Of a DNA stretch of 64,000 nucleotides, positions 1 to 52,595 are shown in pieces; within the stretch, counting starts at the first letter, position 1; each line of letters opens with the position of its first letter. This DNA comes from Thalia democratica (lineage: Eukaryota): the NCBI GenBank assembly GCA_965202585.1, contig OZ241833.1:50220001-50284000 (forward strand), given 5' to 3'. The position numbers were made by a program, and so were the translations under genes. The notes under the pieces are model-generated. The model was given only the letters and a program-made list of their open reading frames with translations, was not told the DNA's origin and searched no databases.

Positions 1-421
1 ATTTGTTGGTTAAAGTCATTTAAAAGTGATGTTTCAATGTATTTATACAGTTAATCCTCTTTTATTTGGAAAAAATTTGGTCCACAGGCATGTGCATAGA
101 ATCATACAATTTTATGTTGAAAAAATTTGCATAATTTTGTATAGCTTGCGTTGACAACACTAAACATTCGACTTGTGAAAATTCGACGAAGTTGCTGTTA
201 TCAAGTTCTTAAATAATATATTTTAACTAGTATTTAGAAAGTAAAATATATGCACACTTATCTTTATATAATAGATAGCGATAGCTTTTCTCAATAAAAT
301 GTTTCTTTCTGAGTTTAAAATTAATTGTTAATTAAAATTTGATATTCAATTACAGCAATATAATTCACTAAATAATTTTAAGTTTTTTAGTTTTTTAAAG
401 ATAATAATCTATAATAAATCT

Positions 422-1155
422 ATGAAACAAAACGATGAAAAACACTTAGCACCACGAAACTCCGACGATGAAACCAGCAAAACGTCGGAAGAAGATTCAG
501 AAAAAGAATTGGAAAACCAATTTTGTTTGACAGAAAAGATTTAGTAGTGAAAGAGTTGTTACAAGAATGAGGGTGCGGCTGCGTGTGCAACGCCACTTAT
601 AAAAACAAAAATGTCGTTGTCAAGACTTCATCAGCTGAAAGCAAAGACAAATACATTTTGCAGGAGTACGAGTTCCTGAAAATTCTCCAACAGGAAAACG
701 TTCGCGGCATTCCAAAGATCGGTCCGAGATTTGTTCATGAGGAAAGGCAGAGTTTTGTTTTGGAAAAACTCGGAAAGGACCTGTTTGATAAAAGAGAAGA
801 GACGAGAAAGGAAAAGTTTTCGTTGAAGACCACGGTGAAGGTAGCCTTGCAAGTGTTGAAAATACTGAATCACGTCCACAGCTGTGGCATCGTTCACAAC
901 GACATCAAATCCGAGAACCTCATGACAGGATTGTTCGATCAAAACACGATCTACCTGATTGACTTCGGGCATTCAACATTCTACGCGAAAGACGGAGAGC
1001 ACGTTAGAGACGAGCGCAGCGGGAAATTGCGCGGAACCCTGGCTTACAGGTCAGTGAACAGCCTGAAACTGAGAAATCAGAGCCGAAATTTGATGATATG
1101 CGGACAGAAAATGAAAAATCAAGGAAGTTGTAAAAACTGTGAAATTATAAAATGA
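422..1155 (+). pseudogene. CK1-like fragment: 1-nt deletion (ttggaaaacc), TGA at 568-570, C-lobe missing
   Basis: ATG at 422; the ORF track recovers only 583-1155; VVVK, HNDIKSEN and DFG motifs are present. Confidence 0.9.
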
Positions 1156-1927
1156 AAGGTTGACTAAAAAGATGCTTGATGAAAATTTACACAACAACAG
1201 TTTAAAAGAGTTTTATTAAGAATCAGCCTTGTTTGATGGGCCAGTTTAAAAAATGGTCAAATTAGCACGTCAGCGTGATATTTTCAATTTTTCAACCCAA
1301 CCCAAAAACATGCTAGAAAGCAGGCCATGGCCAACATGAGCAATAATTGTGTATTTTTAGTTCATTTAAATGTTCAAAAATTGTTTTATTAAGCATTTTA
1401 TAGTGCATTTTCACTTAAAAGTGCAAAAAAATGAATTTTCACTAATTTTCTTAGGTTTTGCTTGTTTTTCACAATTCTTTCACTTAAACATGGTGAAAAA
1501 CAAGCTATTTGTTGGTTAAAGTCATTTAAAAGTGATGTTTCAATGTATTTATACAGTTAATCCTCTTTTATTTGGAAAAAATTTGGTCCACAGGCATGTG
1601 CATAGAATCATACAATTTCATGTTGAAAAAATTTGCATAATTTTGTATAGCTTGCGTTGACAACACTAAACATTCGACTTGTGAAAATTCGACGAAGTTG
1701 CTGTTATCAAGTTCTTAAATAATATATTTTAACTAGTATTTAGAAAGTAAAATATATGCACACTTATCTTTATATAATAGATATCGATAGCTATTCTCAA
1801 TAAATTGTTTCTTTCTGAGTTTAAGTTTAATTGTTAATTAAAATTTGATATTCAATTACAGCAATATAATTCACTAAATTATTTTAAGTTTTTTAATTTT
1901 TTAAAGATAATAATCTATAATAAAGCT

Positions 1928-2594
1928 ATGAAACGAAACGAAGAAAAACACTTTGTACCGCGAAACTCCGACGAAGAAACCAACAAAACGTCGAAAGAAG
2001 ATTCAGAAAAAGAATTGGAAAAACCAATTTTGTTTGACAGAGAAGATTTAGTAGTGAAAGAGTTGTTACAAGAAGGAGGATGCGGCTGTGTGTACAACGC
2101 CACTTATAAAAACAAACATGTCGTGGTCAAGACTTCATCAGCTGAAAGCAAAGACAAATACATTTTGCAGGAGTACGAGTTCCTAAAAATTCTCCAAAAG
2201 GAAAACGTTCGCGGCATTCCAAAGATCGGTCCTAGATTTGTTCATGAAGAAAGGCAGAGTTTCGTTGTCTAAAAACTCGGAAAGGACCTGTTTGATAAAA
2301 GAGGAGAGACGAGAAAGGACAAGTTTTCGTTGAATACCACGGTGAAGGTAGCCTTGCAAGTGTTGAAAATACTGAATCACGTCCACAGCTGTGGCATCGT
2401 TCACAACGACATCAAATCTGAGAACCTCATGACAGGATTATTCGATCAAAACACGATCCACCTGATTGATTTCGGGCATTCAACATTCTACGTGAAAGAC
2501 GGAGAGCACGTTAGAGACGAGCACAGCGGTAAATCGCGCGGAACCCTGGCTTCAAGTCAGTGAACAGCCTGAAACTGAGAAATCAGAGCCGAAA
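1928..2594 (+). pseudogene. CK1-like fragment, type A (TAA at codon 115, 1-nt deletion near GTLA, C-lobe missing)
   Basis: GAA>TAA at 2270-2272 splits the ORF into 114 aa and 77 aa pieces; kinase homology ends at ccgaaa 2594. Confidence 0.92.
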
Positions 2595-3433
2595 TTTGAT
2601 GATATGCGGACAGAAAATGAAAAATCAAGGAAGTTGTAAAAACTGTGAAATTATAAAATGAAAGGTTGACTAAAAAGATGCTTGATGAAAATTTACACAA
2701 TAACAGTTTAAAAGAGTTTTATTAAGAATCAGCCTTGTTTGATGGGCCAGTTTAAAAAATGGTCAAATTAGCACGTCAGCGTGATATTTTCAATTTTTCA
2801 ACCCAACCCAAAAACATGCTAGAAAGCAGGCCATGGCCAACATGAGCAATAATTGTGTATTTTTAGTTCATTTAAATGTTCAAAAATTGTTTTATTAAGC
2901 ATTTTATAGTTCATTTTCACTTAAAAGTGCAAAAAAATGAATTTTCACTAATTTTCTTAGGTTTTGCTTGTTTTTCACAATTCTTTCACTTAAACATGGT
3001 GAAAAACAAGCTATTTGTTGGTTAAAGTCATTTAAAAGTGATGTTTCAATGTATTTATACAGTTAATCCTCTTTTATTTGGAAAAAATTTGGTCCACAGG
3101 CATGTGCATAGAATCATACAATTTCATGTTGAAAAAATTTGCATAATTTTGTATAGCTTGCGTTGACAACACTAAACATTCGACTTGTGAAAATTCGACG
3201 AAGTTGCTGTTATCAAGTTCTTAAATAATATATTTTAACTAGTATTTAGAAAGTAAAATATATGCACACTTATCTTTATATAATAGATATCGATAGCTAT
3301 TCTCAATAAATTGTTTCTTTCTGAGTTTAAGTTTAATTGTTAATTAAAATTTGATATTCAATTACAGCAATATAATTCACTAAATTATTTTAAGTTTTTT
3401 AATTTTTTAAAGATAATAATCTATAATAAAGCT

Positions 3434-4100
3434 ATGAAACGAAACGAAGAAAAACACTTTGTACCGCGAAACTCCGACGAAGAAACCAACAAAACGTCGA
3501 AAGAAGATTCAGAAAAAGAATTGGAAAAACCAATTTTGTTTGACAGAGAAGATTTAGTAGTGAAAGAGTTGTTACAAGAAGGAGGATGCGGCTGTGTGTA
3601 CAACGCCACTTATAAAAACAAACATGTCGTGGTCAAGACTTCATCAGCTGAAAGCAAAGACAAATACATTTTGCAGGAGTACGAGTTCCTAAAAATTCTC
3701 CAAAAGGAAAACGTTCGCGGCATTCCAAAGATCGGTCCTAGATTTGTTCATGAAGAAAGGCAGAGTTTCGTTGTCTAAAAACTCGGAAAGGACCTGTTTG
3801 ATAAAAGAGGAGAGACGAGAAAGGACAAGTTTTCGTTGAATACCACGGTGAAGGTAGCCTTGCAAGTGTTGAAAATACTGAATCACGTCCACAGCTGTGG
3901 CATCGTTCACAACGACATCAAATCTGAGAACCTCATGACAGGATTATTCGATCAAAACACGATCCACCTGATTGATTTCGGGCATTCAACATTCTACGTG
4001 AAAGACGGAGAGCACGTTAGAGACGAGCACAGCGGTAAATCGCGCGGAACCCTGGCTTCAAGTCAGTGAACAGCCTGAAACTGAGAAATCAGAGCCGAAA
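3434..4100 (+). pseudogene. CK1-like fragment, type A
   Basis: Same translation as the 1928 unit; period 1506. Confidence 0.92.
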
Positions 4101-4939
4101 TTTGATGATATGCGGACAGAAAATGAAAAATCAAGGAAGTTGTAAAAACTGTGAAATTATAAAATGAAAGGTTGACTAAAAAGATGCTTGATGAAAATTT
4201 ACACAATAACAGTTTAAAAGAGTTTTATTAAGAATCAGCCTTGTTTGATGGGCCAGTTTAAAAAATGGTCAAATTAGCACGTCAGCGTGATATTTTCAAT
4301 TTTTCAACCCAACCCAAAAACATGCTAGAAAGCAGGCCATGGCCAACATGAGCAATAATTGTGTATTTTTAGTTCATTTAAATGTTCAAAAATTGTTTTA
4401 TTAAGCATTTTATAGTTCATTTTCACTTAAAAGTGCAAAAAAATGAATTTTCACTAATTTTCTTAGGTTTTGCTTGTTTTTCACAATTCTTTCACTTAAA
4501 CATGGTGAAAAACAAGCTATTTGTTGGTTAAAGTCATTTAAAAGTGATGTTTCAATGTATTTATACAGTTAATCCTCTTTTATTTGGAAAAAATTTGGTC
4601 CACAGGCATGTGCATAGAATCATACAATTTCATGTTGAAAAAATTTGCATAATTTTGTATAGCTTGCGTTGACAACACTAAACATTCGACTTGTGAAAAT
4701 TCGACGAAGTTGCTGTTATCAAGTTCTTAAATAATATATTTTAACTAGTATTTAGAAAGTAAAATATATGCACACTTATCTTTATATAATAGATATCGAT
4801 AGCTATTCTCAATAAATTGTTTCTTTCTGAGTTTAAGTTTAATTGTTAATTAAAATTTGATATTCAATTACAGCAATATAATTCACTAAATTATTTTAAG
4901 TTTTTTAATTTTTTAAAGATAATAATCTATAATAAAGCT

Positions 4940-5606
4940 ATGAAACGAAACGAAGAAAAACACTTTGTACCGCGAAACTCCGACGAAGAAACCAACAAAA
5001 CGTCGAAAGAAGATTCAGAAAAAGAATTGGAAAAACCAATTTTGTTTGACAGAGAAGATTTAGTAGTGAAAGAGTTGTTACAAGAAGGAGGATGCGGCTG
5101 TGTGTACAACGCCACTTATAAAAACAAACATGTCGTGGTCAAGACTTCATCAGCTGAAAGCAAAGACAAATACATTTTGCAGGAGTACGAGTTCCTAAAA
5201 ATTCTCCAAAAGGAAAACGTTCGCGGCATTCCAAAGATCGGTCCTAGATTTGTTCATGAAGAAAGGCAGAGTTTCGTTGTCTAAAAACTCGGAAAGGACC
5301 TGTTTGATAAAAGAGGAGAGACGAGAAAGGACAAGTTTTCGTTGAATACCACGGTGAAGGTAGCCTTGCAAGTGTTGAAAATACTGAATCACGTCCACAG
5401 CTGTGGCATCGTTCACAACGACATCAAATCTGAGAACCTCATGACAGGATTATTCGATCAAAACACGATCCACCTGATTGATTTCGGGCATTCAACATTC
5501 TACGTGAAAGACGGAGAGCACGTTAGAGACGAGCACAGCGGTAAATCGCGCGGAACCCTGGCTTCAAGTCAGTGAACAGCCTGAAACTGAGAAATCAGAG
5601 CCGAAA
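4940..5606 (+). pseudogene. CK1-like fragment, type A
   Basis: Same translation as the 1928 unit; period 1506. Confidence 0.92.
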
Positions 5607-6445
5607 TTTGATGATATGCGGACAGAAAATGAAAAATCAAGGAAGTTGTAAAAACTGTGAAATTATAAAATGAAAGGTTGACTAAAAAGATGCTTGATGA
5701 AAATTTACACAATAACAGTTTAAAAGAGTTTTATTAAGAATCAGCCTTGTTTGATGGGCCAGTTTAAAAAATGGTCAAATTAGCACGTCAGCGTGATATT
5801 TTCAATTTTTCAACCCAACCCAAAAACATGCTAGAAAGCAGGCCATGGCCAACATGAGCAATAATTGTGTATTTTTAGTTCATTTAAATGTTCAAAAATT
5901 GTTTTATTAAGCATTTTATAGTTCATTTTCACTTAAAAGTGCAAAAAAATGAATTTTCACTAATTTTCTTAGGTTTTGCTTGTTTTTCACAATTCTTTCA
6001 CTTAAACATGGTGAAAAACAAGCTATTTGTTGGTTAAAGTCATTTAAAAGTGATGTTTCAATGTATTTATACAGTTAATCCTCTTTTATTTGGAAAAAAT
6101 TTGGTCCACAGGCATGTGCATAGAATCATACAATTTCATGTTGAAAAAATTTGCATAATTTTGTATAGCTTGCGTTGACAACACTAAACATTCGACTTGT
6201 GAAAATTCGACGAAGTTGCTGTTATCAAGTTCTTAAATAATATATTTTAACTAGTATTTAGAAAGTAAAATATATGCACACTTATCTTTATATAATAGAT
6301 ATCGATAGCTATTCTCAATAAATTGTTTCTTTCTGAGTTTAAGTTTAATTGTTAATTAAAATTTGATATTCAATTACAGCAATATAATTCACTAAATTAT
6401 TTTAAGTTTTTTAATTTTTTAAAGATAATAATCTATAATAAAGCT

Positions 6446-7112
6446 ATGAAACGAAACGAAGAAAAACACTTTGTACCGCGAAACTCCGACGAAGAAACCA
6501 ACAAAACGTCGAAAGAAGATTCAGAAAAAGAATTGGAAAAACCAATTTTGTTTGACAGAGAAGATTTAGTAGTGAAAGAGTTGTTACAAGAAGGAGGATG
6601 CGGCTGTGTGTACAACGCCACTTATAAAAACAAACATGTCGTGGTCAAGACTTCATCAGCTGAAAGCAAAGACAAATACATTTTGCAGGAGTACGAGTTC
6701 CTAAAAATTCTCCAAAAGGAAAACGTTCGCGGCATTCCAAAGATCGGTCCTAGATTTGTTCATGAAGAAAGGCAGAGTTTCGTTGTCTAAAAACTCGGAA
6801 AGGACCTGTTTGATAAAAGAGGAGAGACGAGAAAGGACAAGTTTTCGTTGAATACCACGGTGAAGGTAGCCTTGCAAGTGTTGAAAATACTGAATCACGT
6901 CCACAGCTGTGGCATCGTTCACAACGACATCAAATCTGAGAACCTCATGACAGGATTATTCGATCAAAACACGATCCACCTGATTGATTTCGGGCATTCA
7001 ACATTCTACGTGAAAGACGGAGAGCACGTTAGAGACGAGCACAGCGGTAAATCGCGCGGAACCCTGGCTTCAAGTCAGTGAACAGCCTGAAACTGAGAAA
7101 TCAGAGCCGAAA
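6446..7112 (+). pseudogene. CK1-like fragment, type A
   Basis: Same translation as the 1928 unit; period 1506. Confidence 0.92.
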
Positions 7113-7951
7113 TTTGATGATATGCGGACAGAAAATGAAAAATCAAGGAAGTTGTAAAAACTGTGAAATTATAAAATGAAAGGTTGACTAAAAAGATGCT
7201 TGATGAAAATTTACACAATAACAGTTTAAAAGAGTTTTATTAAGAATCAGCCTTGTTTGATGGGCCAGTTTAAAAAATGGTCAAATTAGCACGTCAGCGT
7301 GATATTTTCAATTTTTCAACCCAACCCAAAAACATGCTAGAAAGCAGGCCATGGCCAACATGAGCAATAATTGTGTATTTTTAGTTCATTTAAATGTTCA
7401 AAAATTGTTTTATTAAGCATTTTATAGTTCATTTTCACTTAAAAGTGCAAAAAAATGAATTTTCACTAATTTTCTTAGGTTTTGCTTGTTTTTCACAATT
7501 CTTTCACTTAAACATGGTGAAAAACAAGCTATTTGTTGGTTAAAGTCATTTAAAAGTGATGTTTCAATGTATTTATACAGTTAATCCTCTTTTATTTGGA
7601 AAAAATTTGGTCCACAGGCATGTGCATAGAATCATACAATTTCATGTTGAAAAAATTTGCATAATTTTGTATAGCTTGCGTTGACAACACTAAACATTCG
7701 ACTTGTGAAAATTCGACGAAGTTGCTGTTATCAAGTTCTTAAATAATATATTTTAACTAGTATTTAGAAAGTAAAATATATGCACACTTATCTTTATATA
7801 ATAGATATCGATAGCTATTCTCAATAAATTGTTTCTTTCTGAGTTTAAGTTTAATTGTTAATTAAAATTTGATATTCAATTACAGCAATATAATTCACTA
7901 AATTATTTTAAGTTTTTTAATTTTTTAAAGATAATAATCTATAATAAAGCT

Positions 7952-8618
7952 ATGAAACGAAACGAAGAAAAACACTTTGTACCGCGAAACTCCGACGAAG
8001 AAACCAACAAAACGTCGAAAGAAGATTCAGAAAAAGAATTGGAAAAACCAATTTTGTTTGACAGAGAAGATTTAGTAGTGAAAGAGTTGTTACAAGAAGG
8101 AGGATGCGGCTGTGTGTACAACGCCACTTATAAAAACAAACATGTCGTGGTCAAGACTTCATCAGCTGAAAGCAAAGACAAATACATTTTGCAGGAGTAC
8201 GAGTTCCTAAAAATTCTCCAAAAGGAAAACGTTCGCGGCATTCCAAAGATCGGTCCTAGATTTGTTCATGAAGAAAGGCAGAGTTTCGTTGTCTAAAAAC
8301 TCGGAAAGGACCTGTTTGATAAAAGAGGAGAGACGAGAAAGGACAAGTTTTCGTTGAATACCACGGTGAAGGTAGCCTTGCAAGTGTTGAAAATACTGAA
8401 TCACGTCCACAGCTGTGGCATCGTTCACAACGACATCAAATCTGAGAACCTCATGACAGGATTATTCGATCAAAACACGATCCACCTGATTGATTTCGGG
8501 CATTCAACATTCTACGTGAAAGACGGAGAGCACGTTAGAGACGAGCACAGCGGTAAATCGCGCGGAACCCTGGCTTCAAGTCAGTGAACAGCCTGAAACT
8601 GAGAAATCAGAGCCGAAA
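7952..8618 (+). pseudogene. CK1-like fragment, type A
   Basis: Same translation as the 1928 unit; period 1506. Confidence 0.92.
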
Positions 8619-9458
8619 TTTGATGATATGCGGACAGAAAATGAAAAATCAAAGAAGTTGTAAAAACTGTGAAATTATAAAATGAAAGGTTGACTAAAAA
8701 GACGCTTGATGAAAATTTACACAATAACAGTTTAAAAGAGTTTTATTAAGAATCAGCCTGGTTTGATGGGCCAGTTTAAAAAATGGTCAAATTAGCACGT
8801 CAGCGTGATATTTTCAATTTTTCAACCAAACCCAAAAACATGCTAGAAAGCAGGCCATGGCCAACATGAGCAGTAATTGTGTATTTTTAGTTCATTTAAA
8901 TGTTCAAAAATTGTTTTATTAAGCATTTTATAGTTCATTTTCCACTTAAAAGTGCAAAAAAATGAATTTTCACTAATTTTCTTAGTTTTTGCTTGTTTTT
9001 CACAATTCTTTCACTTAAACATGTTGAAAAACAAGCTATTTGTTGATTAAAGTCATTTAAAAGTGATGTTTCAATGCATTCATACAGTTAATCCTCTTTT
9101 ATTTGGAAAAAATTTGGTCCACAGGCATGTGCATAGAATCATACAATTTTATGTTGAAAAAATTTGCATAATTTTGTATAGCTTGCGTTGACAACACTAA
9201 ACATTCGACTTGTGAAAATTCGACGAAGTTGCTGTTATCAAGTTCTTAAATAATATATTTTAACTAGTATTTAGAAAGTAAAATATATGCACACTTATCT
9301 TTATATAATAGATAGCGATAGCTTTTCTCAATAAAATGTTTCTTTCTGAGTTTAAAATTAATTGTTAATTAAAATTTGATATTCAATTACAGCAATATAA
9401 TTCACTAAATAATTTTAAGTTTTTTAATTTTTTAAAGATAATAATCTATAATAAATCT

Positions 9459-10166
9459 ATGAAACAAAACGATGAAAAACACTTAGTACCACGAAACTCC
9501 GACGAAGAAACCAGCAAAACGTTGAAAGAAGATTCAGAAAAAGAATTGGAAAAACCAATTTTGTTTGACAAAGAAGATTTAGTAGTGAAAGAGTTGTTAC
9601 AAGAAGGAGGATGCGGCTGTGTGTACAATGCCACTTATAAAAACAAACTTGTCGTTGTCAAGACTTCATCAGCTGAAAGCAAAGACAAATACATTTTGCA
9701 GGAGTACGAGTTCTTGAAAATTCTCCAAAAGGGAAACGTTCGCGGCATTCCAAAGATCGGTCCTAGATTCGTTCATGAAGAAAGACAGAGTTTTGTTGTC
9801 GAAAAACTCGGAAAGGACCTGTTTGATAAAAGAAAAGAGACGAGAAAGGACAAGTTTTCGTTGAAGACCACGGTGAAGGTAGCCTTGCAAGTGTTGAAAA
9901 TACTGAATCACGTCCACAGCTGTGGCATCGTTCACAACGACATCAAATCTGAGAACCTCATGACTGGATTATTCGATCAAAACACGATCTATCTGATTGA
10001 TTTCGGGTATTCAACATTCTACGTGAAGGACGGAGAGCACGTTAGAGACGAGCACAGCGGCAAATCGCGCGGAACCCTGGCTTACAGTGAACAGCCTGAA
10101 ACTGAGAAACCAAAGCCGAAATTTGATGATATGCGGACAGAAAATGAAAAATCAAAGAAGTTGTAA
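9459..10166 (+). CDS. C-terminally truncated CK1-like kinase ORF, type B (235 aa, open from ATG)
   Basis: Open frame with Gly loop, Lys, HND and DFG. A 5-nt deletion (ggcttac/agtgaac) frameshifts into a spacer-derived tail. Expression unknown. Confidence 0.65.
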   Translation: MKQNDEKHLVPRNSDEETSKTLKEDSEKELEKPILFDKEDLVVKELLQEGGCGCVYNATYKNKLVVVKTSSAESKDKYILQEYEFLKILQKGNVRGIPKIGPRFVHEERQSFVVEKLGKDLFDKRKETRKDKFSLKTTVKVALQVLKILNHVHSCGIVHNDIKSENLMTGLFDQNTIYLIDFGYSTFYVKDGEHVRDEHSGKSRGTLAYSEQPETEKPKPKFDDMRTENEKSKKL

Positions 10167-10961
10167 AAACTGTGAAATTATAAAATGAAAGGTTGACTAA
10201 AAAGACGCTTGATGAAAATTTACACAATAACAGTTTAAAAGAGTTTTATTAAGAATCAGCCTGGTTTGATGGGCCAGTTTAAAAAATGGTCAAATTAGCA
10301 CGTCAGCATGATATTTTCAATTTTTCAACCCAACCCAAAAACATGCTAGAAAGCAGGCCATGGCCAACATGAGCAGTAATTGTGTATTTTTAGTTCATTT
10401 AAATGTTCAAAAATTGTTTTATTAAGCATTTTATAGTTCATTTTCCACTTAAAAGTGCAAAAAAATGAATTTTCACTAATTTTCTTAGTTTTTGCTTGTT
10501 TTTCACAATTCTTTCACTTAAACATGTTGAAAAACAAGCTATTTGTTGATTAAAGTCATTTAAAAGTGATGTTTCAATGCATTCATACAGTTAATCCTCT
10601 TTTATTTGGAAAAAATTTGGTCCACAGGCATGTGCATAGAATCATACAATTTTATGTTGAAAAAATTTGCATAATTTTGTATAGCTTGCGTTGACAACAC
10701 TAAACATTCGACTTGTGAAAATTCGACGAAGTTGCTGTTATCAAGTTCTTAAATAATATATTTTAACTAGTATTTAGAAAGTAAAATATATGCACACTTA
10801 TCTTTATATAATAGATAGCGATAGCTTTTCTCAATAAAATGTTTCTTTCTGAGTTTAAAATTAATTGTTAATTAAAATTTGATATTCAATTACAGCAATA
10901 TAATTCACTAAATAATTTTAAGTTTTTTAATTTTTTAAAGATAATAATCTATAATAAATCT

Positions 10962-11669
10962 ATGAAACAAAACGATGAAAAACACTTAGTACCACGAAAC
11001 TCCGACGAAGAAACCAGCAAAACGTTGAAAGAAGATTCAGAAAAAGAATTGGAAAAACCAATTTTGTTTGACAAAGAAGATTTAGTAGTGAAAGAGTTGT
11101 TACAAGAAGGAGGATGCGGCTGTGTGTACAATGCCACTTATAAAAACAAACTTGTCGTTGTCAAGACTTCATCAGCTGAAAGCAAAGACAAATACATTTT
11201 GCAGGAGTACGAGTTCTTGAAAATTCTCCAAAAGGGAAACGTTCGCGGCATTCCAAAGATCGGTCCTAGATTCGTTCATGAAGAAAGACAGAGTTTTGTT
11301 GTCGAAAAACTCGGAAAGGACCTGTTTGATAAAAGAAAAGAGACGAGAAAGGACAAGTTTTCGTTGAAGACCACGGTGAAGGTAGCCTTGCAAGTGTTGA
11401 AAATACTGAATCACGTCCACAGCTGTGGCATCGTTCACAACGACATCAAATCTGAGAACCTCATGACTGGATTATTCGATCAAAACACGATCTATCTGAT
11501 TGATTTCGGGTATTCAACATTCTACGTGAAGGACGGAGAGCACGTTAGAGACGAGCACAGCGGCAAATCGCGCGGAACCCTGGCTTACAGTGAACAGCCT
11601 GAAACTGAGAAACCAAAGCCGAAATTTGATGATATGCGGACAGAAAATGAAAAATCAAAGAAGTTGTAA
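10962..11669 (+). CDS. Truncated CK1-like ORF, type B (235 aa)
   Basis: Same translation as 9459. Confidence 0.65.
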   Translation: MKQNDEKHLVPRNSDEETSKTLKEDSEKELEKPILFDKEDLVVKELLQEGGCGCVYNATYKNKLVVVKTSSAESKDKYILQEYEFLKILQKGNVRGIPKIGPRFVHEERQSFVVEKLGKDLFDKRKETRKDKFSLKTTVKVALQVLKILNHVHSCGIVHNDIKSENLMTGLFDQNTIYLIDFGYSTFYVKDGEHVRDEHSGKSRGTLAYSEQPETEKPKPKFDDMRTENEKSKKL

Positions 11670-20113: not shown

Positions 20114-20212
20114 AAGTTTGATCAGAAGCCGGATTACGATATGTACTGCGGATTGTTTGAAAAATTACTGAACAAAAACGAAAACGATAGTCGGATTTAT
20201 TGGAAAAGCTAA
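20114..20212 (+). pseudogene. CK1-like C-terminal tail fragment (KFDQKPDYDMYCGLFEKLLNKNENDSRIYWKS*)
   Basis: Matches the end of the terminal copy (KFDQKPDY...DSRINWKR*); no start codon for the kinase body. Confidence 0.9.
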
Positions 20213-41441: not shown

Positions 41442-42170
41442 ATGAAACAAAACGATGAAAAACACTTAGCACCACGAAACTCCGACGATGAAACCAGCAA
41501 AACGTCGAAAGAAGATTCAGAAAAAGAAAAACCAATTTTGTTTGACAGAGAAGATTTAGTAGTGAAAGAGTTGTTACAAGAATGAGGGTGCGGCTGCGTG
41601 TGCAACGCCACTTATAAAAACAAAAATGTCGTTGTCAAGACTTCATTAGCTGAAAGCAAAGACAAATACATTTTGCGGGAGTACGAGTTCCTGAAAATTC
41701 TCCAACAGGAAAACGTTCGCGGCATTCCAAAGATCGGTCCGAGATTTGTTCATGAGGAAAGGCAGAGTTTTGTTTTGGAAAAACTCGGAAAGGACCTGTT
41801 TGATAAAAGAGAAGAGACGAGAAAGGAAAAGTTTTCGTTGAAGACCACGGTGAAGGTAGCCTTGCAAGTGTTGAAAATACTGAATCACGTCCACAGCTGT
41901 GGCATCGTTCACAACGACATCAAATCTGAGAACCTCATGACAGGATTATTCGATCAAAACACGATCTACCTGATTGACTTCGGGCATTCAACATTCTACG
42001 CGAAAGACGGAGAGCACGTTAGAGACGAGCGCAGCGGGAAATTGCGCGGAACCCTGGCTTACATGTCAGTGAACAGCCTGAAACTGAGAAATCAGAGCCG
42101 AAATTTGATGATATGCGGACAGAAAATGAAAAATCAAAGAAGTTGTAAAAACTGTGAAATTATAAAATGA
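41442..42170 (+). pseudogene. CK1-like fragment, type D
   Basis: Period 1501; same translation. Confidence 0.9.
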
Positions 42171-42942
42171 AAGGTTGACTAAAAAGATGCTTGATGAAAA
42201 TTTACACAATAACAGTTTAAAAGAGTTTTATTAAGAATCAGCCTGGTTTGATGGGCCAGTTTAAAAAATGGTCAAATTAGCACGTCAGCGTGATATTTTC
42301 AATTTTTCAACCCAACCCAAAAACATGCTAGAAAGCAGGCCATGGCCAACATGAGCAGTAATTGTGTATTTTTAGTTCATTTAAATGTTCAAAAATTGTT
42401 TTATTAAGCATTTTATAGTTCATTTTCACTTAAAAGTGCAAAAAAATGAATTTTCACTAATTTTCTTAGTTTTTGCTTGTTTTTCACAATTCTTTCACTT
42501 AAACATGTTGAAAAACAAGCTATTTGTTGATTAAAGTCATTTAAAAGTGATGTTTCAATGTATTCATACAGTTAATCCTCTTTTATTTGGAAAAAATTTG
42601 GTCCACAGGCATGTGCATAGAATCATACAATTTTATGTTGAAAAAATTTGCATAATTTTGTATAGCTTGCGTTGACAACACTAAATATTCGACTTGTGAA
42701 AATTCGACGAAGTTGCTGTTATCAAGTTCTTAAATAATATATTTTAACTAGTATTTAGAAAGTAAAATATATGCACACTTATCTTTTTAAAATTTATAGC
42801 GATAATTATTTTCAATGAATTGTTTCTTACTGAGTTTAAATTTAATTGTTAACTAAAATTTGATATTAAATTACAGCAATATAATTCACTAAATAATTTT
42901 AAGTTTTTTAATTTTTTAAAGATAATAATCTATAATAAATCT

Positions 42943-43671
42943 ATGAAACAAAACGATGAAAAACACTTAGCACCACGAAACTCCGACGATGAAACCAGCA
43001 AAACGTCGAAAGAAGATTCAGAAAAAGAAAAACCAATTTTGTTTGACAGAGAAGATTTAGTAGTGAAAGAGTTGTTACAAGAATGAGGGTGCGGCTGCGT
43101 GTGCAACGCCACTTATAAAAACAAAAATGTCGTTGTCAAGACTTCATTAGCTGAAAGCAAAGACAAATACATTTTGCGGGAGTACGAGTTCCTGAAAATT
43201 CTCCAACAGGAAAACGTTCGCGGCATTCCAAAGATCGGTCCGAGATTTGTTCATGAGGAAAGGCAGAGTTTTGTTTTGGAAAAACTCGGAAAGGACCTGT
43301 TTGATAAAAGAGAAGAGACGAGAAAGGAAAAGTTTTCGTTGAAGACCACGGTGAAGGTAGCCTTGCAAGTGTTGAAAATACTGAATCACGTCCACAGCTG
43401 TGGCATCGTTCACAACGACATCAAATCTGAGAACCTCATGACAGGATTATTCGATCAAAACACGATCTACCTGATTGACTTCGGGCATTCAACATTCTAC
43501 GCGAAAGACGGAGAGCACGTTAGAGACGAGCGCAGCGGGAAATTGCGCGGAACCCTGGCTTACATGTCAGTGAACAGCCTGAAACTGAGAAATCAGAGCC
43601 GAAATTTGATGATATGCGGACAGAAAATGAAAAATCAAAGAAGTTGTAAAAACTGTGAAATTATAAAATGA
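42943..43671 (+). pseudogene. CK1-like fragment, type D
   Basis: Period 1501; same translation. Confidence 0.9.
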
Positions 43672-44443
43672 AAGGTTGACTAAAAAGATGCTTGATGAAA
43701 ATTTACACAATAACAGTTTAAAAGAGTTTTATTAAGAATCAGCCTGGTTTGATGGGCCAGTTTAAAAAATGGTCAAATTAGCACGTCAGCGTGATATTTT
43801 CAATTTTTCAACCCAACCCAAAAACATGCTAGAAAGCAGGCCATGGCCAACATGAGCAGTAATTGTGTATTTTTAGTTCATTTAAATGTTCAAAAATTGT
43901 TTTATTAAGCATTTTATAGTTCATTTTCACTTAAAAGTGCAAAAAAATGAATTTTCACTAATTTTCTTAGTTTTTGCTTGTTTTTCACAATTCTTTCACT
44001 TAAACATGTTGAAAAACAAGCTATTTGTTGATTAAAGTCATTTAAAAGTGATGTTTCAATGTATTCATACAGTTAATCCTCTTTTATTTGGAAAGAATTT
44101 GGTCCACAGGCATGTGCATAGAATCATACAATTTTATGTTGAAAAAATTTGCATAATTTTGTATAGCTTGCGTTGACAACACTAAACATTCGACTTGTGA
44201 AAATTCGACGAAGTTGCTGTTATCAAGTTCTTAAATAATATATTTTAACTAGTATTTAGAAAGTAAAATATATGCACACTTATCTTTTTAAAATTTATAG
44301 CGATAATTATTTTCAATGAATTGTTTCTTACTGAGTTTAAATTTAATTGTTAACTAAAATTTGATATTAAATTACAGCAATATAATTCACTAAATAATTT
44401 TAAGTTTTTTAATTTTTTAAAGATAATAATCTATAATAAATCT

Positions 44444-45172
44444 ATGAAACAAAACGATGAAAAACACTTAGCACCACGAAACTCCGACGATGAAACCAGC
44501 AAAACGTCGAAAGAAGATTCAGAAAAAGAAAAACCAATTTTGTTTGACAGAGAAGATTTAGTAGTGAAAGAGTTGTTACAAGAATGAGGGTGCGGCTGCG
44601 TGTGCAACGCCACTTATAAAAACAAAAATGTCGTTGTCAAGACTTCATTAGCTGAAAGCAAAGACAAATACATTTTGCGGGAGTACGAGTTCCTGAAAAT
44701 TCTCCAACAGGAAAACGTTCGCGGCATTCCAAAGATCGGTCCGAGATTTGTTCATGAGGAAAGGCAGAGTTTTGTTTTGGAAAAACTCGGAAAGGACCTG
44801 TTTGATAAAAGAGAAGAGACGAGAAAGGAAAAGTTTTCGTTGAAGACCACGGTGAAGGTAGCCTTGCAAGTGTTGAAAATACTGAATCACGTCCACAGCT
44901 GTGGCATCGTTCACAACGACATCAAATCTGAGAACCTCATGACAGGATTATTCGATCAAAACACGATCTACCTGATTGACTTCGGGCATTCAACATTCTA
45001 CGCGAAAGACGGAGAGCACGTTAGAGACGAGCGCAGCGGGAAATTGCGCGGAACCCTGGCTTACATGTCAGTGAACAGCCTGAAACTGAGAAATCAGAGC
45101 CGAAATTTGATGATATGCGGACAGAAAATGAAAAATCAAAGAAGTTGTAAAAACTGTGAAATTATAAAATGA
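44444..45172 (+). pseudogene. CK1-like fragment, type D
   Basis: Period 1501; same translation. Confidence 0.9.
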
Positions 45173-45944
45173 AAGGTTGACTAAAAAGATGCTTGATGAA
45201 AATTTACACAATAACAGTTTAAAAGAGTTTTATTAAGAATCAGCCTGGTTTGATGGGCCAGTTTAAAAAATGGTCAAATTAGCACGTCAGCGTGATATTT
45301 TCAATTTTTCAACCCAACCCAAAAACATGCTAGAAAGCAGGCCATGGCCAACATGAGCAGTAATTGTGTATTTTTAGTTCATTTAAATGTTCAAAAATTG
45401 TTTTATTAAGCATTTTATAGTTCATTTTCACTTAAAAGTGCAAAAAAATGAATTTTCACTAATTTTCTTAGTTTTTGCTTGTTTTTCACAATTCTTTCAC
45501 TTAAACATGTTGAAAAACAAGCTATTTGTTGATTAAAGTCATTTAAAAGTGATGTTTCAATGTATTCATACAGTTAATCCTCTTTTATTTGGAAAGAATT
45601 TGGTCCACAGGCATGTGCATAGAATCATACAATTTTATGTTGAAAAAATTTGCATAATTTTGTATAGCTTGCGTTGACAACACTAAACATTCGACTTGTG
45701 AAAATTCGACGAAGTTGCTGTTATCAAGTTCTTAAATAATATATTTTAACTAGTATTTAGAAAGTAAAATATATGCACACTTATCTTTTTAAAATTTATA
45801 GCGATAATTATTTTCAATGAATTGTTTCTTACTGAGTTTAAATTTAATTGTTAACTAAAATTTGATATTAAATTACAGCAATATAATTCACTAAATAATT
45901 TTAAGTTTTTTAATTTTTTAAAGATAATAATCTATAATAAATCT

Positions 45945-46673
45945 ATGAAACAAAACGATGAAAAACACTTAGCACCACGAAACTCCGACGATGAAACCAG
46001 CAAAACGTCGAAAGAAGATTCAGAAAAAGAAAAACCAATTTTGTTTGACAGAGAAGATTTAGTAGTGAAAGAGTTGTTACAAGAATGAGGGTGCGGCTGC
46101 GTGTGCAACGCCACTTATAAAAACAAAAATGTCGTTGTCAAGACTTCATTAGCTGAAAGCAAAGACAAATACATTTTGCGGGAGTACGAGTTCCTGAAAA
46201 TTCTCCAACAGGAAAACGTTCGCGGCATTCCAAAGATCGGTCCGAGATTTGTTCATGAGGAAAGGCAGAGTTTTGTTTTGGAAAAACTCGGAAAGGACCT
46301 GTTTGATAAAAGAGAAGAGACGAGAAAGGAAAAGTTTTCGTTGAAGACCACGGTGAAGGTAGCCTTGCAAGTGTTGAAAATACTGAATCACGTCCACAGC
46401 TGTGGCATCGTTCACAACGACATCAAATCTGAGAACCTCATGACAGGATTATTCGATCAAAACACGATCTACCTGATTGACTTCGGGCATTCAACATTCT
46501 ACGCGAAAGACGGAGAGCACGTTAGAGACGAGCGCAGCGGGAAATTGCGCGGAACCCTGGCTTACATGTCAGTGAACAGCCTGAAACTGAGAAATCAGAG
46601 CCGAAATTTGATGATATGCGGACAGAAAATGAAAAATCAAAGAAGTTGTAAAAACTGTGAAATTATAAAATGA
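45945..46673 (+). pseudogene. CK1-like fragment, type D
   Basis: Period 1501; same translation. Confidence 0.9.
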
Positions 46674-47445
46674 AAGGTTGACTAAAAAGATGCTTGATGA
46701 AAATTTACACAACAACAGTTTAAAAGAGTTTTATTAAGAATCAGCCTGGTTGGATGGGCCAGTTTAAAAAATGGTCAAATTAGCACGTCAGCGTGATATT
46801 TTCAATTTTTCAACCCAACCCAAAAACATGCTAGAAAGCAGGCCATGGCCAACATGAGCAGTAATTGTGTATTTTTAGTTCATTTAAATGTTCAAAAATT
46901 GTTTTATTAAGCATTTTATAGTTCATTTTCACTTAAAAGTGCAAAAAAATGAATTTTCACTAATTTTCTTAGTTTTTGCTTGTTTTTCACAATTCTTTCA
47001 CTTAAACATGTTGAAAAACAAGCTATTTGTTGATTAAAGTCATTTAAAAGTGATGTTTCAATGTATTCATACAGTTAATCCTCTTTTATTTGGAAAGAAT
47101 TTGGTCCACAGGCATGTGCATAGAATCATACAATTTTATGTTGAAAAAATTTGCATAATTTTGTATAGCTTGCGTTGACAACACTAAACATTCGACTTGT
47201 GAAAATTCGACGAAGTTGCTGTTATCAAGTTCTTAAATAATATATTTTAACTAGTATTTAGAAAGTAAAATATATGCACACTTATCTTTTTAAAATTTAT
47301 AGCGATAATTATTTTCAATGAATTGTTTCTTACTGAGTTTAAATTTAATTGTTAACTAAAATTTGATATTAAATTACAGCAATATAATTCACTAAATAAT
47401 TTTAAGTTTTTTAATTTTTTAAAGATAATAATCTATAATAAATCT

Positions 47446-48147
47446 ATGAAACAAAACGATGAAAAACACTTAGCACCACGAAACTCCGACGATGAAACCA
47501 GCAAAACGTCGAAAGAAGATTCAGAAAAAGAAAAACCAATTTTGTTTGACAGAGAAGATTTAGTAGTGAAAGAGTTGTTACAAGAATGAGGGTGCGGCTG
47601 CGTGTGCAACGCCACTTATAAAAACAAAAATGTCGTTGTCAAGACTTCATTAGCTGAAAGCAAAGACAAATACATTTTGCGGGAGTACGAGTTCCTGAAA
47701 ATTCTCCAACAGGAAAACGTTCGCGGCATTCCAAAGATCGGTCCGAGATTTGTTCATGAGGAAAGGCAGAGTTTTGTTTTGGAAAAACTCGGAAAGGACC
47801 TGTTTGATAAAAGAGAAGAGACGAGAAAGGAAAAGTTTTCGTTGAAGACCACGGTGAAGGTAGCCTTGCAAGTGTTGAAAATACTGAATCACGTCCACAG
47901 CTGTGGCATCGTTCACAACGACATCAAATCTGAGAACCTCATGACAGGATTATTCGATCAAAACACGATCTACCTGATTGACTTCGGGCATTCAACATTC
48001 TACGCGAAAGACGGAGAGCACGTTAGAGACGAGCGCAGCGGGAAATTGCGCGGAACCCTGGCTTACAGTGAACAGCCTGAAACTGAGAAACCAAAGCCGA
48101 AATTTGATGATATGCGGACAGAAAATGAAAAATCAAAGAAGTTGTAA
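47446..48147 (+). pseudogene. CK1-like fragment, D/B recombinant
   Basis: Type D body with TGA; type B tail (AYSEQPETEKPKPKF...). Confidence 0.9.
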
Positions 48148-48942
48148 AAACTGTGAAATTATAAAATGAAAGGTTGACTAAAAAGACGCTTGATGAAAAT
48201 TTACACAATAACAGTTTAAAAGAGTTTTATTAAGAATCAGCCTGGTTTGATGGGCCAGTTTAAAAAATGGTCAAATTAGCACGTCAGCGTGATATTTTCA
48301 ATTTTTCAACCCAACCCAAAAACATGCTAGAAAGCAGGCCATGGCCAACATGAGCAGTAATTGTGTATTTTTAGTTCATTTAAATGTTCAAAAATTGTTT
48401 TATTAAGCATTTTATAGTGCATTTTCCACTTAAAAGTGCAAAAAAATGAATTTTCACTAATTTTCTTAGTTTTTGCTTGTTTTTCACAGTTCTTTCACTT
48501 AAACATGGTGAAAAACAAGCTATTTGTTGGTTAAAGTCATTTAAAAGTGATGTTTCAATGGATTTATACAGTTAATCCTCTTTTATTTGGAAAAAAATTG
48601 GTCCACAGGCATGTGCATAGAATCATACAATTTTATGTTGAAAAAATTTGCATAATTTTGTATAGCTTGCGTTGACAACACTAAATATTCGACTTGTGAA
48701 AATTCGACGAAGTTGCTGTTATCAAGTTCTTAAATAATATATTTTAACTAGTATTTAGAAAGTAAAATATATGCACACTTATCTTTATATAATAGATATC
48801 GATAGCTATTCTCAATAAATTGTTTCTTTCTGAGTTTAAGTTTAATTGTTAATAAAAATTTGATATTCAATTACAGCAATATAATTCACTAAATTATTTT
48901 AAGTTTTTTAATTTTTTAAAGATAATAATCTATAATAAAGCT

Positions 48943-49863
48943 ATGAAACGAAACGAAAAAAAATACTTAGTACCACGAAACTCCGACGAAGAAACCAGCA
49001 AAACGTCGAAAGAAGATTCAGAAAAAGAAAAACCAATTTCGTTTGACAGAGAAGATTTAGTAGTGAAAGAGTTGTTACAAGGTTGAGGGTGCGGCTGCGT
49101 GTACAACGCCACTTATAAAAACAAACATGTCGTGGTCAAGACTTCATCAGCTGAAAGCAAAGACAAATACATTTTGCTGGAGTACGAGTTCCTGAAAATT
49201 CTCCAACAGGAAAACGTTCGCGGCATTCCAAAGATCGGTCCTAAATTTGTTCATAAGGAAAGGCAGAGTTTCGTTGTGGAAAAACTCGGAAAGGACCTGT
49301 TTGATAAAAGAAAAGAGACGAGAAAGGACAAGTTTTCGTTGAAGACCACGGTGAAGGTAGCCTTGCAAGTGTTGAAAATACTGAATCACGTCCACAGCTG
49401 TGGCATCGTTCACAACGACATCAAATCTGAGAACCTCATGACGGGATTATTCGATCAAAACACGATCTACCTGATTGACTTCGGGTATTCAACATTCTAC
49501 GTGAAAGACGGAGAGCACGTTAGAGACGAGCACAGCGGTAAATCGCGCGGAACCCTGGCTTTCAGATCAGTGAACAGCCTGAAACAGAGAAATCAGAGCC
49601 GAAAGGACGATCTCGAGTCTTTGGCCTACAACCTCGTGGAACTGTTGACTGGTAAACTGCCTTGGGATGCAGTTGAAAGGAATAACAAAATAAGCAAGGA
49701 GGAAAAAGAGAAGCTGTTGATAGAATGCAAAGAGAAGCCCGCAGAGGAAATTTGCAAAGGAATGCCCAAAGAGTTGGCTTACAGTGAACAGCCTGAAACT
49801 GAGAAACCAGAGCCGAAATTTGATGATATGCGGACAGAAAATGAAAAATCAAGGAAGTTGTAA
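48943..49863 (+). pseudogene. CK1-like fragment with part of the C-lobe (RKDDLESLAY...LPW...CKGMPKE), an in-frame TGA and an internal back-jump
   Basis: TGA 49084-49086; after gcccaaagagtt (49775) the sequence returns to ggcttacagtgaac. Confidence 0.9.
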
Positions 49864-50703
49864 AAACTGTGAAATTATAAAATGAAAAGTTGACTAAAAA
49901 GATGCTTGATATAAAGGAAAATGGTAAGCAAGGAATCATTAAGCTGAATCAAATTGAAAATTTACACAATAACAGTTTAAAAGAGTTTTGTTAAGAATCA
50001 GCCTGGTTTGATGGGCCAGTTTAAAAAATGGTCAAATTAGCACGTCAGCGTGATATTTTCAATTTTTCAACCCAACCCAAAAACATGCTAGAAAGCAGGC
50101 CATGGCCAACATGAGCAATAATTGTGTATTTTCAGTTCATTTAAATGTTCAAAAATTGTTTTATTAAGCATTTTATAGTGCATTTTCCACTTAAAAGTGC
50201 AAAAAAATGAATTTTCACTAATTTTCTTAGTTTTTGCTTGTTTTTCACAGTTCTTTCACTTAAACATGGTGAAAAACAAGCTATTTGTTGATTAAAGTCG
50301 TTTAAAAGTAATATTTCAATGTATTTATGCAGTTAATCCTCTTTTATTTGGAAAAAATTTGGTCCACAGGCATGTGCATAGAATCATACAATTTTATGTT
50401 GAAAAAATTTGCATAATTTTGTATAGCTTGCGTTGACAACACTAAACATTCGACTTGTGAAAATTCGACGAAGTTGCTGTTATCAAGTTCTTAAATAATA
50501 TATTTTAACTAGTATTTAGAAAGTAAAATATATGCACACTTATCTTTATATAATAGATAGCGATAGCTATTCTCAATAAAATGTTTCTTACTGAGTTTAA
50601 ATTTAATTGTTAATTAAAATTTGATATTCAATTACAGCAATATAATTCACTAAATTATTTTAAGTTTTTTAATTTTTTAAAGATAATAATCTATAATAAA
50701 GCT

Positions 50704-51707
50704 ATGAAACGAAACGAAGAAAAATACTTAAAGAAGGAGGGTGCGAAATAAGAAGAAAAATACTTAGTACCACGAAACTCCGACGAAGAAACCAGCAAAA
50801 CGTCGAAAGAAGATTCAGAAAAAGAATTGGAAAAACCAATTTTGTTTGACAGAGAAGATTTGTAGTGAAAGAGTTGTTACAAGAAGGAGGGTGCGGCTGT
50901 GTGTACAACGCCACTTATAAAAACAAACATGTTGTTGTCAAGACTTCATCAGCTGAAAGCAAAGACAAATACATTTTGCAGGAGTACGAATTCCTAAAAA
51001 TTCTACAAAAGGAAAACGTTCGCGGCATTCCAAAGATCGGTCCTAGATTTATTCATGAAGAAAGGCAGAGTTTCGTTGTCGAAAAACTCGGAAAGGACCT
51101 GTTTGATAAAAGAGAAGAGACGAGAAAGGACAAGTTTTCGTTGAAGACCACGGTGAAGGTAGCCTTGCAAGTGTTGAAAATACTGAATCACGTCCACAGC
51201 TGTGGCATCGTTCACAACGACATCAAATCTGAGAATCTCATGACAGGATTATTCGATCAAAACACGATCCACCTGATTGATTTCGGGTATTCAACATTCT
51301 ACGTGAAAGACGGAGAGCACGTTAGAGACGAGCACAGCGGTGAATCGCGCGGAACCCTGGCTTTCAGGTCAGTGAACAGCCTGAAACTGAGAAACCAAAG
51401 CCGAAAGGACGATCTCGAGTCTTTGGCCTACAACCTCGTGGAACTTTTGACTGGTAAACTGCCTTGGGATGCAGTTGAAAGGAATGACAAAATAAGCAAG
51501 GAGGAAAAAGAGAAGCTGTTGATAGAATGCAAAGAGAAGCCCGCAGAGGAAATTTGCAAAGGAATGCCCAAAGAGTTTGCACTTTTCCTCAAAGAAGCCA
51601 GAAGTTTAAAGTTTGATCAGAAGCCGGATTACGATATGTACTGCGGATTGTTTGAAAAATTACTGAACAAAAACGAAAACGATAGTCGGATTAATTGGAA
51701 ACGTTAA
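50704..51707 (+). pseudogene. Terminal CK1-family Ser/Thr kinase copy: complete kinase domain (open 50865-51707, 280 aa from GTG) with a disrupted 5' end
   Basis: CK1 hallmarks: HNDIKSEN, LIDFG, GTLAFRSVN (SIN-type motif, no APE), SRKDDLESLAY, GKLPW, EICKGMPKEF, RSLKFDQKPDY. There is a 36-bp insertion with TAA at 50749-50751 and a 1-nt deletion near 50861. Confidence 0.85.
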
Positions 51708-52595
51708 TGAATTACTAAAATTCTATATTTTAAACGTTTTGTGTTTTGCTTTAAATTAACATAGAATTTAGTGGTTTAATTTTGTTATTTTCCTTTAGAT
51801 TATTTTATGGCATAAAATGTTTTGAGAATATTATTTGCAACTTCTTGATAAAATAAAACAATGAATTTTTAAAATTAAAATAAATTAAAACCACCTGAAA
51901 ACTAAAATAAATTAATAATACTTTTCAAATTGTACATCTCTTTAGAATAGTTTCACTTAAAATTTATTTCTACAGTCGTTTTAAAATTCTTTTTAATATA
52001 ACAAACAAAATTATGTTTTAGTAAAAATGAATAAATTTTAGAAAAAAATTCAATTTTTAGAAAAATCTGATTGATTTTATTATAAATTAACGAAAATTAC
52101 GCTTGATTTAGTAAAAAACATTAAAACTAAGTTTTCTGTGGGTAGGCTGTGGTTAAAAGAATCAACTGCCGTTATATATACGTAAAAACAAGTGGGTTGC
52201 TTAAACCAGTGTGCACGATATTTTTTTTCAGGTGCACAAAACTTTAGTGTGCACCAAATTTTTAGGGTACACAAAAACAAAATTCAAGTTTTTTTGTTTT
52301 ATTTATTTCAACCGAAACAGCATAATATTAAAATTAAATCCAGCACTATTGTTTGATTTGCATTTTCATATAGTCGCATGAAATTAATTAGCATTTATTT
52401 AAGTATGACACTTTAACTGGAAACATACAATCGTATATTAAGTATTCAGTGTAGAGTTATCAAAATTAAAACAAAATCCTGGAAACTCTGAAAACCAGGA
52501 ACTTCAAAATGGGTGTTGCCACTCGTTCAAGTCGGAAGTACCATCCCGCACAGTTACATCCATACTTACAAGAAATATTAAGTACTTTTGCCAAA

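Follow-up and report, generated by a model that had tools for sequence, protein, structure and literature searches.

A tandem array of broken casein kinase 1-like gene copies in the genome of Thalia democratica

Introduction

How does a protein kinase gene come to be repeated head to tail over tens of kilobases with nearly every copy broken, and do such copies need a function to persist? These questions are raised by a stretch of 64,000 nucleotides from Thalia democratica, referred to here as the window, that occupies positions 50,220,001 to 50,284,000 of contig OZ241833.1 in GenBank assembly GCA_965202585.1 (C9:50220001-50284000, where C9 is a contig of 57.8 Mb in an assembly of 801.8 Mb and 1833 contigs). 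An earlier sequence-only reading of the window had described a tandem array made almost entirely of crippled casein kinase 1 (CK1)-like genes. The explanation that we consider best, with a probability of about 0.75, is that this is a young gene-derived tandem array, or macrosatellite, that arose from an intronless CK1-group gene by neutral amplification of a dead allele. We describe it as a set of dead gene copies that are still recombining, not as a working gene cluster.

Results

Layout of the array

The units were located with tblastn, using the 280-amino-acid (aa) open reading frame (ORF) of the last unit as the query against the window, and this gave 36 matches, all on the plus strand. 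A blastn search with an intact coding sequence recovered the same 36 units, with starts at 422, 1928, and onward to 50752. Homology to the unit stops at 51735, which is the 3' end of the array and corresponds to position 991 of the reference unit described below. The window contains no undetermined bases (Ns), and the G+C content is 31 to 35% within the array and 23 to 28% in the flank. Periods were measured as the distance from each 20-mer to its next occurrence, and the peaks fell at 1501 bp (8685 words), 1506 bp (7668), 1503 bp (6049), 1480 bp (5452), 1095 bp (3714), and 1094 bp (1969). The periodicity runs from base 1 to approximately 50 kb, and none was found from 50 to 64 kb. Tandem Repeats Finder returned no rows for the window, its longest period being 500, which is below the unit lengths.

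Neighboring units are 96.2 to 100% identical, and seven neighbor pairs are 100% identical over 1094 to 1506 bp. Perfect periodicity extends over at most 7.2 kb. Units of different types differ from one another by 2 to 4%, and from the intact unit by up to ~6%, while differences within a block are only 0 to 0.3%. With units ordered head to tail in a single orientation, and with more than 10 highly identical copies that have a unit junction in common, the array has the makeup of a macrosatellite. These results agree with the sequence-only reading on the one-orientation array of 36 units at positions 1 to 51735, an end coordinate that matches exactly, on its periods of 1506, 1503, 1094-1095, 1480, and 1501 bp, and on the near identity of units inside blocks. 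That reading had also given every unit the same upstream region; this holds for all of the ~1.5-kb units (92 to 97% identity), but the six units of the 1094/1095-bp class have a variant spacer and no gene start.

The array extends beyond the window. On C9 as a whole it starts at 50187712 and covers ~84 kb, 32 kb of it upstream of the window, with 52 units that all lie on the plus strand.

The gene from which the units derive

Units were compared with an intact reference unit of 1833 bp, consisting of coding nucleotides (nt) 1 to 963, 28 bp of 3' sequence, and an 840-bp noncoding spacer (993 to 1833). The intact copy of the array lies 28 kb upstream of the window (C9:50191765-50192727) and is a single continuous ORF of 320 aa. 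In the units of the window, the Pfam Pkinase domain was detected with E values of 2e-19 to 3e-27, the last unit giving 3e-27. The best matches among solved structures were all members of the CK1 family (Gilgamesh, 7.6e-37; CK1 epsilon/delta, ~1e-34), with TTBK and VRK coming next. With residues 44 to 311 of the intact copy, the top 45 solved structures were all CK1 or TTBK (E = 2e-36 to 9e-31). In the alignment with Gilgamesh and CK1 epsilon, SVN of the intact copy falls on SIN, QSRKDDLESLAY on QSRRDDLESLGY, and LPW on LPW. The hallmarks of CK1 can be recognized in the intact copy, namely SVN at the site where CK1 proteins have SIN instead of APE, DDLES and LPW of subdomains IX/X, the catalytic lysine in VVVK, DIKSEN (D-x-K-x-x-N), and DFG; the HRD motif deviates and reads HND. 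The Pfam and structure matches bear out the CK1-like identity that had been proposed. The gene is intronless, because the intact copy is one uninterrupted ORF that aligns with CK1 over the entire catalytic domain, and from these motifs and matches we take the units to derive from an intronless CK1-group protein kinase gene.

The nearest named sequence relatives of the intact copy are protist and fungal CK1 proteins, at 31 to 40% identity. By language-model features, its nearest protein-atlas clusters are nematode CK1-like proteins and kinases of giant viruses (Nucleocytoviricota), which we regard as a lead only.

Lesions of the window units

There is no working CK1 kinase among the 36 units of the window, and none of them combines a complete catalytic domain with a start codon. 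A lesion map against the intact unit showed that 36 of 36 are crippled, which goes further than the "almost" all of the earlier description. An identical deletion of reference nt 663 to 992 (330 bp) is carried by 29 of the 36 units. It takes residues 221 to 320 (only part of them in unit 35, type J), beginning with SRKDDLES where helix alphaF starts, and the stop codon as well. The deletion begins between QS and RKDDLESLAY, at a point that aligns with QSRRDDLESLGY of CK1 epsilon. It is flanked by two CYGAAA microhomologies, and the junction sequence is the same in all 29 units.

Further lesions are superimposed on this deletion. In units 1 and 22 to 35, a TGA stop, confirmed in the sequence, replaces codon 48, the first glycine codon of the glycine-rich loop (TGA-48). 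A TAA stop at codon 113 (TAA-113) is found in the six type A units, and insertions or deletions of 5 and 12 bp add to the damage in some units. Altogether, premature stops (TGA-48, TAA-113) or frameshifts occur in 21 of the ~1.5-kb units, and 21 of the 29 junction units are affected before the junction is reached. An ORF that begins with ATG stays open to the junction in only eight units, those of types B and D (235 and 244 aa), and these two types read the junction in different frames and end in different tails. Six units (14 to 19) are without residues 1 to 287 and have just the last 101 coding bases left. The last unit (36) has kept the kinase domain and lost a usable ATG. The unit-by-unit map is given in Table 1.

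Table 1. Units of the array in the window and related intact or distant copies elsewhere in the assembly. Positions without a contig prefix are those of the window; "deletion" means the 663-992 deletion, and nt numbers are those of the reference unit.
Feature	Position	Strand	Description
Spacer tail of 3300-bp unit beginning before the window	1..421	+	Truncated unit with insertion of the 1.78-kb element bounded by terminal inverted repeats
Unit 1	422..1927	+	1506 bp; deletion, 5-bp insertion frameshift at nt 87, TGA-48; most closely related to the 1501-bp units 36 kb downstream
Deletion junction, example	1081..1107	+	27-mer beginning AGCCGAAATTTG; 29 copies in window
Units 2-5, type A	1928..7951	+	Four 100% identical units of 1506 bp; deletion, TAA-113 (e.g., 2270-2272), 1-bp deletion at nt 618; ATG-initiated ORF of 114 aa
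Unit 6, hybrid	7952..9458	+	Type A to ~unit position 659, type B from ~702
Units 7-8, type B	9459..12463	+	1503/1502 bp; deletion, 5-bp deletion at nt 620; the 235-aa ATG-initiated ORF continues into the junction; in unit 8, B gives way to A at ~unit position 809-854
Unit 9, type A	12464..13969	+	Identical to units 2-5 despite three units between
Units 10-13, type B	13970..20111	+	235-aa ORFs; in unit 10, A gives way to B at ~unit position 197-255; unit 13 (1633 bp) has the longer variant spacer at its end
Units 14-19	20112..26549	+	Five of 1094/1095 bp, last of 965 bp; coding nt 863-963 plus variant spacer
Units 20-21, type D	26550..29540	+	1481 and 1510 bp; deletion, no earlier lesion; ATG-initiated ORF of 244 aa
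Units 22-26, type E	29541..36939	+	1479/1480 bp; deletion, TGA-48, 12-bp deletion at nt 593; unit 22 additionally has the 5-bp frameshift; units 23-25 100% identical
Units 27-33, type H	36940..47445	+	1500/1501 bp; deletion, TGA-48 (e.g., 38581-38583, caa gaa TGA ggg tgc); neighbors with 0-9 mismatches
Unit 34, type I	47446..48942	+	1497 bp; deletion, TGA-48, 5-bp deletion at nt 620
Unit 35, type J	48943..50751	+	1809 bp; rearranged hybrid, TGA-48; coding nt 1-836 joined (49764-49789) to ~nt 612-662 of a truncated unit, then the 663-992 junction
Unit 36, type K, last unit	50752..51735	+	280-codon kinase frame at 50865-51707; homology ends at nt 991; start lost: after the ATG at 50706, ~35 bp with an in-frame TAA are inserted, and 1 bp is deleted at nt 117
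Intact paralogue, 320 aa	C9:49969287-49970249	-	Dispersed
Intact paralogue, 322 aa	C9:50046035-50047003	-	Dispersed
Intact paralogue, 325 aa	C4:60881400-60882377	+	Dispersed
Distant CK1-like paralogues	C7:8.22-9.16 Mb; C109:25911-81142; C5:3061132; C1:73716849; C7:48963429; C8:10377311

Three other ways of accounting for the broken frames were considered and rejected. Introns do not explain them, since the 320-aa ORF is uninterrupted and the lost parts are absent from the units, not interrupted. A nonstandard genetic code that reads through TGA was dismissed because codon 48 of the intact paralogues is GGA and specifies the glycine of the glycine-rich loop, and because there are other lesions, namely TAA stops and frameshifts. 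Processed (retroposed) pseudogenes were set aside because the units are in tandem and abut directly, have no poly(A), and keep the 840-bp upstream spacer.

Upstream units, paralogues, and a second array

Broken units also dominate the array upstream of the window, with the result that 51 of the 52 array units on C9 are defective. Of the upstream units, 14 are full length and one is intact. A TAA at codon 6 is combined with TGA-48 in 11 of the 14 full-length units, nine of which are frameshifted in addition, and two more of the 14 stop 16 codons early. Two of the upstream units, 3300 bp in length, are truncated and contain an inserted element of 1.78 kb with inverted repeats of 23 bp at its ends.

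The insertion itself lies at C9:50214455-50216234 and is repeated 3300 bp downstream. Its 23-bp terminal inverted repeats start with TAGTGATGTACCGG, subterminal 41-bp repeats are rich in CCGG, and CTTACAGG is duplicated at the flanks. Judging by this structure, it is probably a nonautonomous DNA transposon that was copied once together with its host unit.

A genome-wide search for other arrays and for intact copies identified an array on the unplaced contig C76 and, besides the one intact array copy, three dispersed intact paralogues that are 93 to 97% identical. The dispersed paralogues share only ~230 bp of upstream sequence and, like the array, lose homology after reference nt 991. More distant CK1-like paralogues (52 to 81% identity) were also seen, tens of kilobases apart and several with in-frame stops; a protein search placed paralogues of 52 to 73% identity on C7, C109, C5, and C1. 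The pattern suggests that the CK1-like family is large and decaying at several places in the genome.

The 27-mer that spans the deletion junction has 82 exact copies in the genome assembly, 31 on C9 and 51 on C76, with none on any other contig, and the reversed pattern, used as a control, occurred 0 times genome-wide. C76 is 112,150 bp long and consists of array from end to end. It holds 51 units of 1473 bp with the 663-992 junction and approximately 25 units of 1458/9 bp with a separate deletion, of reference nt 564 to 935, which is absent from the C9 array. In contrast to the array-only, unplaced C76, the C9 array is anchored in a chromosome-scale contig with both ends visible, and has full-length units, an intact copy, and four further unit types. 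The C76 units fall in clades of their own and have their own lengths (1473 and 1458 bp); these separate clades indicate that C76 is not a second rendering of the window.

Recombination between units

The order of variants within the array records individual exchanges. Scored at 52 sites that separate types A and B, units 6, 8, and 10 proved to be hybrids of the two with a single clean breakpoint each, at three different positions in the unit. There is a three-unit higher-order period of 4512 bp that is 99.0% identical. TGA-48 and the 663-992 deletion are seen in all four combinations, a four-gamete pattern, and informative sites are mosaic and shared with the dispersed intact copies. Taken together with the identity of unit 9 to units 2 to 5, the hybrid units, the four-gamete pattern, and the mosaics are signatures of unequal crossing-over and gene conversion, with the units misaligned. 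The contrast between differences of 2 to 4% between types and 0 to 0.3% within blocks implies that old variants were reamplified in very recent bursts. Indeed, the runs of 100% identical units and the A/B hybrids substantiate the recent or ongoing amplification and homogenization that had been suggested from a first inspection of the window.

Units 14 to 19 appear as a separate line within the array. They derive from a 2018-bp unit type in which a deletion of ~923 bp took the proximal promoter and coding nt 1 to 862.

Discussion

A proposed neutral origin for the array

The sequence of events that we favor can be partly read from the units themselves. A segment of 1,833 bp, comprising an 840-bp upstream spacer that holds the promoter, 963 bp of coding sequence, and 28 bp of 3' sequence, was duplicated in tandem. 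One copy then lost reference nt 663 to 992 in a microhomology-mediated event between the two CYGAAA words. Through recombination out of register and gene conversion between units, this dead allele and a second one with only the last 101 coding bases then rose in number and were reshuffled; the hybrid units and the four combinations of TGA-48 with the deletion show this in part, and unequal exchange between sister chromatids or homologues is the likely route. The latest expansions left the runs of three to five units whose identity covers the whole or the greater part of the unit. The copies in the window presumably make no working kinase and would need no function to persist. The kinase role would be carried by the intact array copy 28 kb upstream and the three dispersed intact paralogues. 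In keeping with neutral amplification, the coding remnant is no more conserved than its surroundings, showing 92.5 to 95.5% identity to the intact unit versus 93.6 to 96.6% for the noncoding spacer.

Several observations weigh against this account. Pairwise ratios of nonsynonymous to synonymous substitution (dN/dS) between unit types are mostly 0.2 to 0.6, similar to those among intact copies. Substitutions private to one crippled type number 11 synonymous, 21 nonsynonymous, and 1 stop (omega ~0.5), a departure from neutrality that is borderline (binomial p = 0.047); the intact copies give 8:13, with p of ~0.04 to 0.05 each. The eight type B and D units keep ATG-initiated ORFs of 235 to 244 aa that cover the N-lobe, the catalytic loop, and DFG. 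Finally, C76 may be a second locus, the other haplotype, or an unplaced part of the array. Because the intact copies give the same ratio (8:13), we attribute the low ratio in the crippled types to variation that was inherited from functional copies or acquired from them by conversion. This is a weak test, and it leaves room for selection on the eight open units.

Alternative explanations

One alternative is that the array is kept for RNA. Unidirectional transcripts would supply PIWI-interacting RNAs (piRNAs) or small interfering RNAs (siRNAs) to adjust or shut down the expression of the four intact paralogues; alternatively, the array would take part in an ampliconic conflict like that of Stellate and Su(Ste). 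All 52 units do have the same orientation, each with a promoter-bearing spacer, there are at least 82 copies facing 4 intact targets of 93 to 97% identity, and two of the intact paralogues lie in the opposite orientation 170 to 250 kb upstream on the same contig. However, there are no inverted units inside the array to yield double-stranded RNA, an Rfam scan of the window found no RNA family, and neutral unequal crossing-over accounts for every feature seen. By analogy with the Drosophila system a role of this kind is conceivable, but we regard it as improbable here.

A broader version of the same idea would make the array one arm of a dosage or conflict system, in which transcripts or N-lobe proteins of 235 to 244 aa modulate the four intact paralogues, for example, in the germline. 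If true, this would explain both the persistence of truncated forms in independent samples and the dN/dS values below 1. Such a system would parallel Su(Ste)/Stellate, with a CK1 catalytic domain as its source and a relative of the chordates as its host, but we give it little credence.

Could the copy number have been inflated or the units misordered by the assembler, or could C76 and the C9 array be two renderings of one locus? Perfectly periodic runs of up to 7.2 kb and a 112-kb contig of only related units left unplaced are what such an artifact might produce. Against this, the array shows ordered variant blocks, hybrids whose breakpoints are clean, and edge units, J and K, that are each unique; such structure is not made by assembly errors. 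In addition, it contains zero Ns within a contig of 57.8 Mb. The distinct clades and lengths of the C76 units speak against the one-locus version. Assemblers tend to collapse arrays of this kind, not to expand them.

Independent assemblies were informative on this point. Truncated ORFs of the same kind, with 3 to 7% residue differences, are present in independent ENA and Logan assemblies, where the relatives are P0001, P0050-58, and P0066. P0066 has the D-type junction with its out-of-frame tail and is 93% identical to the D-type ORF. The join within unit 35, which occurs a single time in the genome assembly, is found also in P0050 and P0051, the latter being 97% identical to that unit. The recurrence of the same lesions in independent assemblies indicates that they are not artifacts of the present one, and the residue differences indicate that the ENA and Logan ORFs come from other copies or other individuals. 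The junction 27-mer gave no matches in JGI metagenome contigs. On balance, the ordered blocks, the hybrids, the unique edge units, the absence of Ns, and a longest perfect span of only 7.2 kb favor a correct assembly of the array, and an assembly artifact seems quite unlikely.

A further alternative, that types B and D encode a functional half-kinase of 235 to 244 aa that would bind as a dominant-negative partner to the intact kinase or serve it as decoy or scaffold, can draw on the eight ORFs that stay open to the junction, on the 22-residue out-of-frame tail of the D-type ORF, which has the same length in P0066, and on dN/dS values below 1 among unit types, but it is made very unlikely by the earlier stops or frameshifts in 21 of the 29 junction units, which show that the bulk of the amplification was not for such a protein, by the differing B and D tails, by a coding part no more conserved than the spacer, and by the loss of helices alphaF to alphaI, which removes the hydrophobic core of the kinase C-lobe and makes stable folding unlikely.

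Comparison with known arrays

The neutral macrosatellite that we propose can be set beside several known systems. Stellate and Su(Ste) of Drosophila melanogaster are likewise composed of kilobase-sized tandem units from a casein-kinase-related gene, with block homogenization and many defective copies in tens to hundreds. Stellate derives from the CK2 beta regulatory subunit, whereas the C9 array has its origin in a CK1 catalytic domain. The Drosophila arrays are also sex-linked, and for Su(Ste) a function through piRNAs has been demonstrated. In the human D4Z4 (DUX4) macrosatellite, an intronless gene and its upstream region are similarly arranged head to tail in 10 to 100 units of 1 to 3 kb, with array length set by unequal exchange as a further common feature. 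Every D4Z4 unit keeps an intact DUX4 ORF, whereas 51 of the 52 C9 units are broken, mostly by one common deletion. The Trypanosoma cruzi TcCK1.2 casein kinase 1 genes offer a case of a CK1 gene amplified in tandem on one chromosome (chromosome 32), resolved only by long-read assembly, and there the copies are treated as an expanded, expressed gene family and not as defective copies (PMC10808112). Unlike TcCK1.2, which belongs to a protist, the amplified allele in the C9 array is a deletion derivative. Our literature search found no description of the C9 array or of kinase-pseudogene arrays in tunicates. The earlier view that such an array is unusual has only moderate support.

If neutral amplification is the right explanation, the array illustrates how one loss-of-function allele can reach ~80 assembly copies by recombination alone. 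A single contig displays the original deletion and the microhomology that gave rise to it, hybrid units as traces of individual exchanges, and one intact copy that survives. For annotators, there is a caution that apparent kinase "expansions" of this genome may be largely arrays of dead copies. Should the array yield small RNAs or half-kinase proteins after all, it would be a rare case, outside Drosophila, of a regulatory or selfish array that derives from a kinase.

Flanking sequence

Beyond the array, a 560-aa open frame at 61879-63561 on the minus strand contains a YRDDGL motif like that of reverse transcriptases, an extended low-complexity stretch rich in Asn, and, toward the C terminus, a motif that resembles GIY...YIG (VIYKV...KIYIGST). 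Pfam gave no match to this frame, whose motifs suggest the 3' portion of a Penelope-like retroelement. A 101-aa ORF at 52956-53261 on the plus strand has a weak match to the LRRC8 pannexin-like transmembrane region (E = 0.002; 17.6 bits, below the cut-off of 25) and may be an exon of a flanking gene. On the other side, 44 to 57 kb upstream of the window and 17 to 25 kb upstream of the array start, there are two open frames of ~135 aa on the minus strand (L032:3205-3609 and L033:8527-8928). Both show a weak helix-loop-helix match (E ~0.005, below the cut-off) and may be duplicated exons of the basic helix-loop-helix (bHLH) type.

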